From Octopus bimaculoides (lineage: Eukaryota), in the NCBI RefSeq assembly GCF_001194135.2, contig NC_068996.1, positions 27,346,120 to 27,408,235 on the forward strand: a stretch of DNA of 62,116 bases. The letters are read 5' to 3'. Shown here one piece after another: positions 46,988-58,522 of the stretch (its first letter is position 1; each line of letters begins with the position of its first letter). A program made the translations under genes and the position numbers. The notes beneath the pieces are model-generated. The model worked only from the letters and a program-made list of their open reading frames with translations. It searched no databases and was not told the DNA's origin.

Positions 46988-47080
46988 TGTATTGATATAT
47001 CGATGATTTTAGCTGAGGCTGTACGGCGTACTCACAACGGAGAGTCTGTATCTTACCTGTTTTCCAATGTGCCAATGTAG
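46988..47080 (+). CDS. PRPS1: PRPS terminal exon 7A, proximal copy ([30 protein letters not shown])
   Basis: Acceptor ctctttcccttttttcag; 93 nt ending in TAG. It completes a 957-nt, 318-aa ORF from ATG 26660. Confidence 0.96.
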
Positions 47081-49280
47081 ATGCTGTTGCCAGTTGATTG
47101 ACACTTTTATAATGCAGGTTCTTATAAAAGAAACAAAGAATATCTTCAAAGAAAACATGCATGGTTATTTTGTTTGAAATATATTATTTGCATGTTATTT
47201 GTGAAAATGAATTATGCACTTAACTAAAAATGATGCTTTAGCTAAATATTTTAGCTTTTTCTTCATAATTTCAGATTAAAACTGCTAAAGACTTTATGGG
47301 GTGGGAATTTTTTAAAATAAAATTTACAAAAATTGGGTTTTGTTTTCACTCCTTTTCTCTCAAAATTATTTGTATGGTTGACTCTGTCTTGATAAAGTCA
47401 TTGTAAGATTATGGTCCATATTTTTAGTGAATATGATTAGCTTAATTTTTTTTTCATTCATAAGATTTAAGTTTTTTTTTTTCTCAATTCTTGACAGAGA
47501 AGCATGTGCATGCCATTATTCTTAGAATCTTCCTAATCTTGATTTTCTTTGTTAGGCTGCTGTTGCTTTCTTTTCCTCTTGATGAATTCATTACCTTTTC
47601 TTTTAATGAAATCATTACCTTCTCTAATTGGATATCAAGGTAAAATATTGCTTCAGTGCTCAGATCTCTTAATTTCTGGATAGAAAACCCGAGTATATGT
47701 AATTATTTTCTATTCATTTCAAGTAGTTTTTAGTGCTTTTTAGATTTAATTTTCAATCAATTTTTCCAGAGTCTCCTTCAGAATGTTTTATTAAATTCTT
47801 GTAATGCAGCATCTGCCATTTATGAAAAACAAAATTAGCTATTTTGGAATGTTTCTAAATGAAATTTCAGGCACTTTTCTGATCATTATATGGCACAATT
47901 TATTCAAAACTGTCACTGTTTGCTTCAGTTTTAAAAATCAAAACTTTTGTTAATTCTGTCTTATTCTTGGAATATTTTGAGCATTATGCAAAATATTAGA
48001 ATTAGAGCAAAAGCAGGATACTTTTTATTTTATTTTCTCTTGTATTTTTGCTAGTTTTTCCTTCATTTTCTTTTTCCTCTTTCTTTTCAATGCTTTTGTT
48101 TATCAAAGCAATAGTAACTCTGAGAAGTTTCTTTTTCACATTTGGTCTGTGGTGTGTATTTATTATTATTGGAAATGCTGCTTCTGCTTCTTTTTTCTTT
48201 CTTGATATAAATTCCAAGAAGCTGTTCGGCTTCTTTAGAGTGCTAGTCAATTGTTGCTCTTTGAAAATAAATGACCCTCATATATATTCATACACATCTA
48301 TTAAATATGCATTTTCTATCCCATCCATGTTTATAAATTGGGCAATATTTGATCGGTAATATTTCTTTGTAGACATGAGCATTAGAAGCCTCTTTTCAAA
48401 TTGTGGTAAAAAGGTGATTTCTTTAGAATTTTTTTTTTTAAAATTTTGTTTGAAATTTCATTTCACCAATATCTCTCAATATTCCCTTTCTGTGGGCTAA
48501 GTAATAGGGTCAATCTAAACTGGTTTTTCTTTAGGATTTTTGTTTATATAAATCTTTCTTGATCCTCTTAGAAACTAGAGATTCTGATATAAAGCAGCTA
48601 GCCTATAAAAAAAACATCATAATATAACTATTGCATGAATCTGGATGAAATTGTTGAAACGACAGAATGATCATTGGTGTACATTGTGACTGGCTTTTAT
48701 TTGTTATGTCTTTTCATCTGCCAAGGTAGATTGAATACAGTTAGGTCGATTACACAAGTGTTTCCACTTATATTTACAAGATTCCTGGGCATTGATTTCC
48801 TAATTATTAATAAGTAATAAATAATGACTCTGAATTCTAATTTACATATTAAAGTAATAGATACCTTTTAACTTGAAGATTGAAGGGAGAAAATGATTAG
48901 AGAAATTTATTTGATAAAACAATAAATTTTAAAAAAACGTGGTGCAAGTGGGAAGTTCTTTCTAAAATATCGTTAAGTTTTGTTTCTTGCACAGGAGAGT
49001 TCTTAATTCCAGTTTTTGACACACTGAAGTAACAATGCTATTTAAGCTGCAGTTTTGTGTAGGTTAAGATTTCTGCAATATAGAACTTTAAGGGTCAGTG
49101 ATTACTTTTATGTGTTTGGTTTATGGGTATCTTTAAAATGAGTTTACAAAATAACTAGACATCTGGATATGACAAGTTAGCCCTCAACTGTGTATGAGCT
49201 AATTTCATCTATCCAGAAACTAGAATCTGTGTCATCTCTGCTAAAATTGTCTCTGTATATGTTAACTATCCACACTTGCT

Positions 49281-50819
49281 GTCACTGATTGAAAAGTAAC
49301 ACCCTATTTTAAAATATTTATAAATTATTTATTAATTGTAATTTTTACAAAAAAATAGATATGAGAGGAAAGCTTTTTGTATGAGGTTTTATTTAAGATT
49401 CGATATGAGCTCCAGATGTTGCACCAGCTTCTTGAGTTGACCAGAAATTGTGTCAGCTAATTTCACCAGGAGCTCTTGTGGATGATAGACATAACTAATC
49501 ATATTTGCCCTTCAAGTTCTTCTAAAGTCTTTGTTTTGGTACAGTAGACTTGTTCCTTTAACCAACCCCAAAGAAAGGAGTGACAGGATATTAAGCCAGG
49601 ACTCCTGGCTAGCTACTCATTTAGACCATGATGACCCATCCATCTCTCGGGGAAGTGGGCATTCAGCCATTGACTAACAAGAGCAAAATGTGGAAGGGGC
49701 ACCATCTTGCATAAAAATCAAATCTTCAATATTCCCCCAAGCACTGATAGCTGACCAGATTTCATCTTGCAGCATAATGAGGTACCCTTCAGCATTCATG
49801 GTATTGCGAAATCCTGTCCGAAGTCATCTTACACCACACCATTACTTTGGGTGAATTCTGCATTTTGTCAAAGATAACAAGATCCTCTCCTGCCCAACAA
49901 TAGCAGTTGTGATTGTTCACGAAGCCACCGATGTGAAATCATCAGTCTAAAGTAGTGGTTCCCAAATTGGGCAGCATTGCTCCCCTGGGGGTGGCGGAAA
50001 GCTCCAAGGGGGTGTTGAAGAAAAGTGGGGCAATAATGGGGTAGTGATTCATGTAGAAACAACAAAATAATGGGTTCATTTGGTTAAGTTTTATTTGTTA
50101 AATACAGTTGCTTTGAATTTGCTTCAGAAAGAGGTCTATGTTTGTGGTGATTAGTTGGTTTGGGGGTGCTAGGAATGTGGCCTGGGTGTTGAGGGGGCAG
50201 CAACCCCAAAAAGTTTGGGAACCCCTGGTCTAGAGGATGCCAATTTTCATACAAAGCCAGCATAGTCTCTCCAAACTCCATGCGAATGTTGCAGTCTTCA
50301 GCTGAGAGTGATTGGCAGTAGTGTGGCTTCAAAGTATGTCATTTAGGCTTCTTGAGCACAGTTTGTATTGTGTGAAAGGAGAGCCCTCTTTCCCTTGCTA
50401 TTTGTTGAATTGACTTCCCTGGGTTGCGTATAAGCATTTCTAGAACTGCTTGTACTGTCTCTTGGTCATTGGACTTGGAAGGGTAACTGTTTCTTCAAAG
50501 CCATGAGTTTTGCGGGACAATTCTTGATCATCTTTGTGTTAACTTGGGCATGTATTCCTCTAATGGTCTTCCACCATCTTTGCACAACAGGTTTCCAAAC
50601 TTCGTAACATGCCACTAGCTAGGCATGCTTCTGCAGGGTAAGTTATTCAGCCATGTTTATAGAGCTCAATAAATTTCAAACAGAGTAATGAATCTGGAAA
50701 AAATATTACAGATTAAATTCTCATACTTCAAAAAAAAAACAAAAATTTCAGAAAAATTTACAATTAATAAATAATTTATAAGTATTTTAATATGGGAGTT
50801 ACTTTTCAATCACCCTGTG
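49281..50819 (-). mobile_element. Tc1/mariner-superfamily element (DD41D/rosa-like) with ~75-bp TIRs
   Basis: TIRs tgattgaaaagtaac..aaaata.ttataaattatttattaattgtaa at both ends. Peptide PKVMVWC...IFMQDGAP.HFAL..WLNAHFPERWMG...RSP.L..C..FLWG; DD41D spacing is inferred across a frameshift. Confidence 0.75.
49953..50227. mobile_element. hAT-type MITE nested in the Tc1-like element
   Basis: Ends tagtggttcccaa...ttgggaacccctg; 8-bp TSD gtctaaag / gtctagag (one mismatch). Confidence 0.8.
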
Positions 50820-57902: not shown

Positions 57903-58118
57903 TTAACTCTTTAGCATTCAGATTACTTGTTTATTTATTCACATTGTTTTGGATTAATTATGAATTGTCTTGTAGCTTCAAAATTCCAATGATATGATTT
58001 ATTTTTTTAGAATGAAATTGTAAGGAAGATATGAGAGGCTGGATCTGGTTGGTTTGAACATAAAACAGGTTGAATATTTTGACATGGTATGACTGGTTTA
58101 GCATTGCTAAAGGGTTAA
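57903..58118 (-). mobile_element. TTAA MITE in reverse orientation, ~310 bp upstream of exon 7B
   Basis: TTAActctttagcattcagatt...tgctaaagggTTAA. Confidence 0.75.
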
Positions 58119-58429
58119 AGCAAGGACCCTGAATAATGTCTGTGTGCACCATGCTTAAAAAGAAAAAAATACTGAGTAGCCTTGCTCAAATGCGACTGAC
58201 TTGGAGATAAATAATTAACTTTATGTTGAAGATTAAAGAAAATCACATACATACTCATAGAAGATGGTAAATGTCTGGTATATATCTGCTTTCTAAGTTC
58301 TATTTGTATCCCAGTCAGGTTTCTTTTTAACTAAGATAGTAAAGTTTGTACATTATCATTTGTTTCTGACATCTTTTCTGTATTCTCTCTCTCTCAATAT
58401 TTTTAATTATTTTTATTTTTATTTTTCAG

Positions 58430-58522
58430 TGTATTGATATATCAATGATGCTTGCCGAAGCCATCAGGCGAACACACAATGGCGAGTCTGTCTCCTATTT
58501 ATTCAGCCATGTTCCTCTCTAA
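58430..58522 (+). CDS. PRPS1: PRPS terminal exon 7B, distal duplicate and alternative last exon ([30 protein letters not shown])
   Basis: Acceptor tttttatttttcag; 93 nt, phase 0, ends in TAA. It also completes a 318-aa ORF when spliced to exon 6, with no frameshift or internal stop. Confidence 0.93.

Follow-up and report, generated by a model that had tools for sequence, protein, structure and literature searches.

Two tandem last coding exons at the PRPS locus of Octopus bimaculoides and their homologues in other spiralian lineages

The PRPS locus and its two terminal exons

We analysed a stretch of 62,116 nucleotides (nt) from Octopus bimaculoides (assembly GCF_001194135.2, contig NC_068996.1, positions 27,346,120 to 27,408,235 of the forward strand), called the window below and numbered from its first letter, which holds a class-I PRPS (ribose-phosphate pyrophosphokinase) locus. 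Six coding exons, found by tBLASTn with a human PRPS1 query, are followed on the same strand by two homologous versions of the last coding exon, here called 7A (proximal) and 7B (distal); the tBLASTn E-values of these two terminal copies, 6e-13 and 5e-12, lie far beyond chance. The coding exons are arranged as follows.

26597-26781, + strand: coding exon 1, with the RefSeq start ATG at 26597 and the conserved MPNIK start at 26660
40573-40756, + strand: coding exon 2, 184 nt, AG/GT borders
42840-42938, + strand: coding exon 3, tBLASTn match with AG/GT borders
43179-43303, + strand: coding exon 4, tBLASTn match with AG/GT borders
45549-45722, + strand: coding exon 5, tBLASTn match with AG/GT borders
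46193-46352, + strand: coding exon 6, ending in ...KIQ at phase 0, with a GT donor at 46353
46988-47080, + strand: terminal exon 7A (proximal), 93 nt, phase 0, 30 codons and TAG; RefSeq isoform X1
58430-58522, + strand: terminal exon 7B (distal), 93 nt, phase 0, 30 codons and TAA; RefSeq isoform X2

All borders of exons 1-6 are of the AG/GT type, and these exons total 864 nt and end in phase 0, so that either terminal copy completes an open reading frame (ORF) of 318 codons. The exon-6 donor (GT directly after 46352) is common to both terminal exons, whose phase-0 acceptors at 46988 (7A) and 58430 (7B) are each preceded by a pyrimidine tract ending in ...tttttcag, a CAG acceptor. Whichever exon is used, the product is the same 318-residue core (339 residues with the leader adopted by RefSeq) except for four residues in the tail. 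Aligned with human PRPS1 (PDB 8dbc), the octopus product matches residues 1-318 on residues 1-318 without a gap (E = 7e-187), and human residue numbering is therefore valid for the octopus protein. The product is a full-length, PRPS1-like class-I PRPS, a kind of enzyme with Pribosyltran_N and Pribosyl_synth domains, and its close homologues all carry PF13793, PF00156 and PF14572.

Compared with each other, the two terminal exons differ at 28 of 93 nt by script count (70% nucleotide identity) and in 23 of 31 codons, the stop included, while 26 of the 30 encoded residues are shared and the four changes are I295M, V300I, N315H and M318L; one serine is encoded by TCC in 7A and by AGC in 7B. Both lie on the + strand, 11.4 kilobases (kb) apart, and intron 6 measures only 0.6 kb. 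An original prediction, made from the letters of the window, had described the pair in these terms (93 nt, phase 0, CAG acceptors, TAG against TAA, 28 nt, 23 codons and 4 residues changed, the TCC/AGC serine), and a script reproduced that description exactly. The human numbering it gave to the four positions (I/M295, V/I300, N/H315, M/L318) is supported by the gap-free PRPS1 alignment. It had also placed no copies of exons 1-6 between 7A and 7B, in agreement with tBLASTn, which detected each of these exons only once in the whole window and no PRPS coding exon downstream of 7B. The resemblances it had named are likewise seen among the homologues: the human tail reads ...AIRR...SHVPL, like 7B, and insect tails read ...AVRR...SNVPY, like 7A.

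Where the original prediction spoke of mutually exclusive last exons, the either/or use holds and the class does not. Each copy ends in its own stop and has no donor, so the two do not form a strict mutually exclusive internal pair; with a shared donor, and for each copy its own in-phase acceptor and its own stop, they are laid out as tandem-duplicated alternative last exons. Their exclusivity follows from their being terminal and without donors, and de novo transcripts of related species carry one tail or the other. We consider it highly probable that the locus is a single class-I PRPS gene whose last coding exon has been duplicated in tandem, with the copies serving as alternative last exons.

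At the exon borders, the last 8 intron bases (tttttcag) and the first 14 exon bases (TGTATTGATATATC) are the same in 7A and 7B and in three Octopus species (window 46980-47001 and 58422-58443), and beyond this shared 14-base start the exon copies differ at 28 of 79 positions. Different exon starts are seen in Sepia, in a decapodiform transcript and in oysters. Short-range gene conversion, a constraint on the splice site or chance could account for the identical tract of acceptor and exon start.

Annotation, transcripts and continuity of the locus

Both C-termini are already present in public annotation as isoforms. The last 318 residues of RefSeq X1 (XP_052829605.1, formerly XP_014779282.1) equal the translation of exons 1-6 plus 7A with 0 mismatches, and those of X2 (XP_052829607.1, formerly XP_014779284.1) equal exons 1-6 plus 7B, again with 0 mismatches. 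An exact look-up of the bare 318-residue products returned no match because the RefSeq translation starts 21 codons upstream, at 26597, and gives 339-residue isoforms. The X1/X2 pair recurs in O. sinensis and O. vulgaris, again with differences at these four residues. Full-text searches on PRPS together with exon duplication or mutually exclusive exons found no paper describing alternative PRPS tails. Two recent studies of PRPS evolution (PMC12238573, PMC13252144) present isoform diversity as arising by gene duplication and treat paralogues and conserved splice junctions, with no intragenic route and no alternative terminal exons. The duplicated PRPS last exon is apparently undescribed in papers; what is new here is the recognition of the exon duplication, of its age and of its structural location, the isoforms themselves being already in RefSeq.

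The window contains ten assembly gaps over 8966-60357, with 2491 N in total. One of the N runs falls between the two terminal exons, in the following interval.

48321-58429, + strand: non-coding interval, an intron when exon 6 joins 7B; contains the gap 53616-53625

Lying in non-coding sequence, this gap leaves the reading frame unaffected and puts continuity alone in question. Together with the distance of 7B from 7A, 11.4 kb as against 0.6 kb for intron 6, it is what could be said for 7B being a separate PRPS paralogue or having been mis-joined at 53616-53625. Two independent gapless sister assemblies contradict this. In the orthologous loci of O. vulgaris (GCA_951406725.2) and O. sinensis (GCA_006345805.1), both free of N, the order is again exon 6, 7A, 7B, the starts of the two terminal exons being 11.9-12.2 kb apart, and window segments 50331-53615 and 53685-56995 are collinear with both loci. 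At base level, the two flanks of the gap run on into each other in the sister species and the window lacks about 47 nt, which makes the gap a short piece left unread and not a mis-join. Moreover, no other PRPS exons lie near 7B, the RefSeq models splice exon 6 to 7B, and the same tandem layout recurs in chromosome-level oyster and chiton assemblies. We regard a paralogue or a mis-join as extremely improbable, and the single gene of the original prediction stands on the exact matches of RefSeq X1 and X2 and on the shared layout of exon 6, 7A and 7B in the two gapless assemblies. An ORF scan between 7A and 7B gave nothing meaningful, and Rfam and tRNA scans of 46000-62116 gave no matches.

In O. 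bimaculoides, mRNAs with either tail are represented by the RefSeq X1 and X2 models. Gene predictors can thread homologous exons, and with usage in this species resting on models, one of the copies might be an unused relic (a pseudo-exon) and its RefSeq isoform a prediction artefact. Transcripts of relatives speak against this. Decapodiform Logan transcripts (L004, L005) run from exon 1 through exon 6 straight into a 7B-type exon ending in ...SHVPL; transcript-derived cephalopod proteins from Logan, that of Sepia pharaonis and four others, are of the 7A type, with a peptide identical to that of octopus 7A; and oyster transcripts were found for each tail. Each tail is present among transcripts assembled de novo from decapodiforms, oysters and Dimorphilus-like samples. 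In three Octopus species, 7A is 100% identical at the nucleotide level and 7B shows one synonymous difference, with frame, acceptor and stop intact in both, and over the distance from octopus to cuttlefish the orthologous copies show only synonymous change.

A further indication comes from Argonauta hians (GCA_054771915.1), the genome of which contains an intronless copy with exons 1-6 joined directly to a 7B-type exon in an intact 339-codon ORF. The copy has weak similarity to window 58587-58635, and is most simply, and probably, explained as a retrocopy of a 7B mRNA, in which case the splice from exon 6 to 7B exists in octopods. Eutherians offer a parallel in the retrogene PRPS1L1. On the intact frames, the synonymous-only change, the transcripts of relatives and the Argonauta copy we reject an unused relic, which we consider very improbable. 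The Argonauta copy occurs on two contigs (L006 10001-11020, L007 10001-11020) with flanks about 90% alike, and its third codon positions are richer in GC than those of the octopus gene.

Age of the exon pair and selection on its copies

Homologous tandem pairs were read in genomes well beyond the cephalopods, and the nemertean Tubulanus has a pair of annotated isoforms. In the oysters Magallana gigas and Crassostrea angulata the copies lie 1.2 kb apart, the proximal reading ...SIILAESVRR...SHVPL and the distal ...STMLAESIRR...THVPM. The chiton Liolophura sinensis has a pair 2.9 kb apart in the same proximal/distal order as octopus. In the annelid Dimorphilus gyrociliatus the proximal tail reads ...SMILSEAVRR..., and 112 nt separate the distal exon from the proximal stop. 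The brachiopod Lingula anatina has a pair 2.4 kb apart, with ...SMVFAESIRR... in the proximal and ...SMMMAEAIRR... in the distal tail. RefSeq isoform pairs that differ only in their last ~30 residues are present for Saccostrea, Ostrea, Liolophura, Lingula and Tubulanus. I295/V300 mark the proximal copy and M295/I300 the distal copy without exception in the cephalopods, oysters, chiton and Dimorphilus. The order and the diagnostic residues are the same in four lineages, which speaks for a single duplication older than the split between molluscs and annelids (more than about 540 million years ago) and against repeated independent duplications or ongoing gene conversion.

Substitution counts by the Nei-Gojobori method are consistent with this age. 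When 7A is compared with 7B of the same species, the proportion of synonymous difference is 0.77-0.96 (five species), a saturated value. Within each copy, octopus 7A and Sepia 7A show 9 synonymous and 0 non-synonymous differences, and octopus 7B differs from decapodiform and Argonauta 7B by 15-16 synonymous differences and 0-1 amino-acid change. Judged from these counts, both copies are under purifying selection. The original prediction had taken the duplication to be old and both copies to be selectively maintained, and had looked to other phyla for a date; saturated synonymous sites, near-zero non-synonymous change within copies, the shared order and residues, and the homologous tandem pair in oyster, chiton, annelid and brachiopod genomes all bear it out.

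Outside the spiralian lineages, Priapulus showed a single terminal exon within 10 kb. The tick Ixodes scapularis has the canonical last exon (L011 22122-22214) and, 1.2 kb downstream, a second terminal exon (L011 23358-23459) with a good acceptor, phase 0 and an open frame encoding a very divergent tail, CIDIVAFFSEAIRRNYEGVTLRPVLVGMPTLYH, followed by a stop. This second exon does not encode the allosteric segment discussed below, and it is used by an I. pacificus gene model (P0142). When the divergent tail served as the query of a homologue search, most matches were fragments of intron read-through, and no other protein with such a tail came up. The exon may be a duplicate of old date that has since diverged, or the product of a separate duplication.

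Two other features of these loci were noted in passing. Lingula anatina has a second copy of PRPS coding exons 1-3 (L013 4169-5440) in the same orientation, about 6 kb upstream of PRPS (10076) and adjoining a single N at 5503; a partial tandem duplication and an artefact of the assembly are the two candidate explanations. A UBE2K-like gene (about 199 residues, UQ_con and UBA domains) lies upstream of PRPS and head-to-head with it in oysters, chiton, Dimorphilus and Lingula (there one gene removed), and in Ixodes a UQ_con gene is also upstream of PRPS, on the same strand as PRPS. This neighbourhood of UBE2K-like and PRPS genes is a conserved microsynteny; the 26 kb upstream of PRPS in the octopus window contain no UBE2K-like gene.

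The encoded tail, the probable 3' untranslated regions and isoform choice

The residues that form the filament interface of human PRPS1 are E298, R301, R302, N305 and E307, and residues 306-315, which take on an ordered state only within the filament, complete an allosteric site; with E307A or a truncation at S308, both filaments and activity are lost (bioRxiv 10.1101/2022.06.27.496812). The terminal exon of the octopus gene encodes these interface residues and the allosteric segment 306-315, in keeping with the structural context given in the original prediction. All five interface residues are present in both 7A and 7B, and within 306-315 only the last residue, 315 (N/H), differs between them; the copy-specific positions 295 and 300 flank E298, R301 and R302. 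The probable role of the two tails is a fine adjustment of the C-terminal segment, which bears the hexamer-stacking interface and closes the allosteric site, coupled to different 3' untranslated regions (3'UTRs). A biochemical difference between them may be small or absent, and a regulatory difference, like the formation of mixed hexamers, is at this stage conjecture.

At the other end of the protein, a 21-codon in-frame leader (26597-26659) lies upstream of MPNIK and is adopted by RefSeq, with in-frame stops just upstream of 26597. Other cephalopods have a similar leader, and leaders of 15-120 residues occur in most molluscan, brachiopod and tick models. As N3 makes a filament contact in human PRPS1, the leader could influence PRPS assembly.

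Conservation extends into the non-coding sequence downstream of each terminal exon, with poly(A) hexamers at the ends of the conserved blocks, and two probable 3'UTRs were delimited.

47081-48320, + strand: probable 7A 3'UTR, delimited by interspecies conservation and hexamers
58523-58972, + strand: probable 7B 3'UTR, at least its start, broken by the gap 58973-59136

Over 1.2 kb after 7A (to about 48300), identity among the Octopus species is 96-100%, against a background of 85-93%; the conservation falls near AATAAA at 48266 and ATTAAA at 48300, and an earlier AATAAA lies at 47316. After 7B, about 450 nt are 95-98% identical among the Octopus species, with ATTAAA at 58822 and the next AATAAA at 59639. 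The second gap (58973-59136) begins 450 nt after the 7B stop, so the distal 3'UTR is not fully readable in this assembly. A slightly wider view of the 7A side, window 46750-48250 (about 1.5 kb around 7A), gives 96-100% identity between O. bimaculoides and O. vulgaris or O. sinensis, with nearby introns at 85-93% and no Rfam match. Non-coding conservation of this unusual strength around 7A suggests a regulatory 3'UTR.

These patterns bring in the main rival to a role of the protein tails themselves, namely that the selected feature is a pair of alternative 3'UTRs, acting on mRNA stability, localisation or translation, the coding part having been co-duplicated because it encodes 30 essential residues and the protein differences being negligible. 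The known contact residues are indeed identical in the two tails, which differ only by I/M, V/I, N/H and M/L; the conserved stretches after 7A and 7B, on the 7A side above the surrounding introns, are as this reading would have them; and C-terminal swaps of duplicated exons operate through alternative polyadenylation (poly(A)) use (PMC8373072). It fits less well that I295/V300 and M295/I300 are kept apart in cephalopods, oysters, chiton and annelid, where neutral sites would be expected to randomise. Nor does it readily account for Dimorphilus, which keeps both coding copies in spite of a spacer (L014 11463-11577) of 112 nt from the proximal stop that contains neither AATAAA nor ATTAAA; the proximal-exon mRNA there probably continues through the distal exon to a common 3' end. 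We hold a purely 3'UTR-based explanation to be possible and rather unlikely; selection on the 3'UTRs and on the protein tails is not mutually exclusive.

The choice between the isoforms can be pictured on the standard model for alternative last exons. Once spliced to 7A, the transcript would be bound to be cleaved and polyadenylated no more than about 1.2 kb downstream, where the hexamers near 47316 or 48266/48300 are the candidate sites. Were the 7A acceptor and the poly(A) sites behind it skipped, transcription would continue for a further 11.4 kb, exon 6 would be joined to 7B, and 7A with its UTR would be removed as intron. How much of each isoform is made would then depend on whether the proximal 3' splice site and poly(A) sites are recognised before elongation reaches the distal exon. 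Docking/selector RNA pairing was looked for between intron 6 and the 1 kb that precedes 7B, with no signal above controls: the duplex energy was -191.5, as against -180 +/- 7.5 for shuffles and -161 to -219 for control intervals.

On the side of the protein, a more ambitious proposal can be made, which we advance tentatively and think less likely to be right than wrong: that the two tails are a functional switch more than 500 million years old, established in the lophotrochozoan ancestor on the filament-stacking and allosteric segment. On this proposal I295/V300 and M295/I300 would shift filament stability or the sensitivity to adenosine diphosphate (ADP) and phosphate, the choice would be regulated by tissue through 3' splice-site and poly(A)-site selection, the pair would be a spiralian counterpart of PRPS1/PRPS2 inside one gene, and the Ixodes exon would possibly be a remnant of an older, protostome-wide pair.

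Several observations weigh against our preferred reading, that of alternative last exons whose tails fine-tune the C-terminal segment. The four substitutions are very conservative, with the known filament and allosteric contact residues identical in both tails. Across phyla, only 295 and 300 are copy-specific, 315 and 318 being inconsistent between phyla, and I300 occurs in both tails of Lingula and Tubulanus. At the Sepia locus, the 10 kb downstream of 7A to which the flank limited the search contained no 7B copy. The poly(A) sites are assigned from hexamer matches and a drop in conservation in an AT-rich genome, and tail usage in O. bimaculoides itself rests on RefSeq computational models.

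Human PRPS1 and PRPS2 are not known to have a terminal exon pair of this kind, and vertebrate PRPS1 and PRPS2 are not known to differ in this exon, which fits the equal scores of the octopus tail against PDB chains of the two proteins (83.6 bits each). Like the octopus isoforms, vertebrate PRPS1 and PRPS2, which are about 95% identical, are two class-I catalytic subunits able in principle to co-assemble (PMC12238573); they are, however, separate genes with separate promoters that arose by whole-gene duplication, whereas the octopus diversity is confined to the last exon.

The octopus pair is a C-terminal substitution from tandem exon duplication and belongs to a known class of alternative last exons. 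The human annotation contains 77 such C-terminal substitutions, most of them ancient and made through alternative poly(A) use (Martinez-Gomez et al. 2021, PMC8373072), and in two of the genes treated there, GNAO1 and PRKCB, tandem homologous 3' coding exons with their own stops give isoforms identical except for a homologous tail, as in octopus PRPS. Unlike these, the octopus case concerns a core metabolic enzyme of spiralian invertebrates, in which 30 residues are swapped with 4 differences. Clusters of mutually exclusive internal exons (arthropod Dscam1; human cases, PMC9741552) share with 7A and 7B the origin by tandem exon duplication and the inclusion of one homologous exon per mRNA. 7A and 7B differ from them in being terminal, each with an acceptor, no donor and a stop, so that exclusivity would come from 3'-end formation and not from docking/selector pairing or spliceosome incompatibility. 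The retinal splice variants of IMPDH1 (PMC10849882) offer a further comparison: IMPDH1 is, like PRPS, a filament-forming enzyme of nucleotide biosynthesis with variant terminal segments, and its variants are reported to alter the assembly of filaments as well as feedback inhibition. Those variants carry added extensions that are not homologous to each other, whereas the PRPS tails are homologous and of equal length.

PRPS makes phosphoribosyl pyrophosphate (PRPP), a chokepoint of nucleotide synthesis, and its activity depends on filament assembly through the segment encoded by the duplicated exon. The case enlarges the small class of ancient substitutions by duplicated exons with one that is deeply conserved, and its practical value is moderate. 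The route to PRPS diversity taken in octopus is intragenic, unlike the whole-gene duplication into PRPS1 and PRPS2 in vertebrates (PMC12238573). The tandem tails kept by molluscs, an annelid and a brachiopod, together with the annotated pair of a nemertean, are natural minimal variants, differing by 2-6 residues, for the tuning of filaments and allostery through the interface helix.

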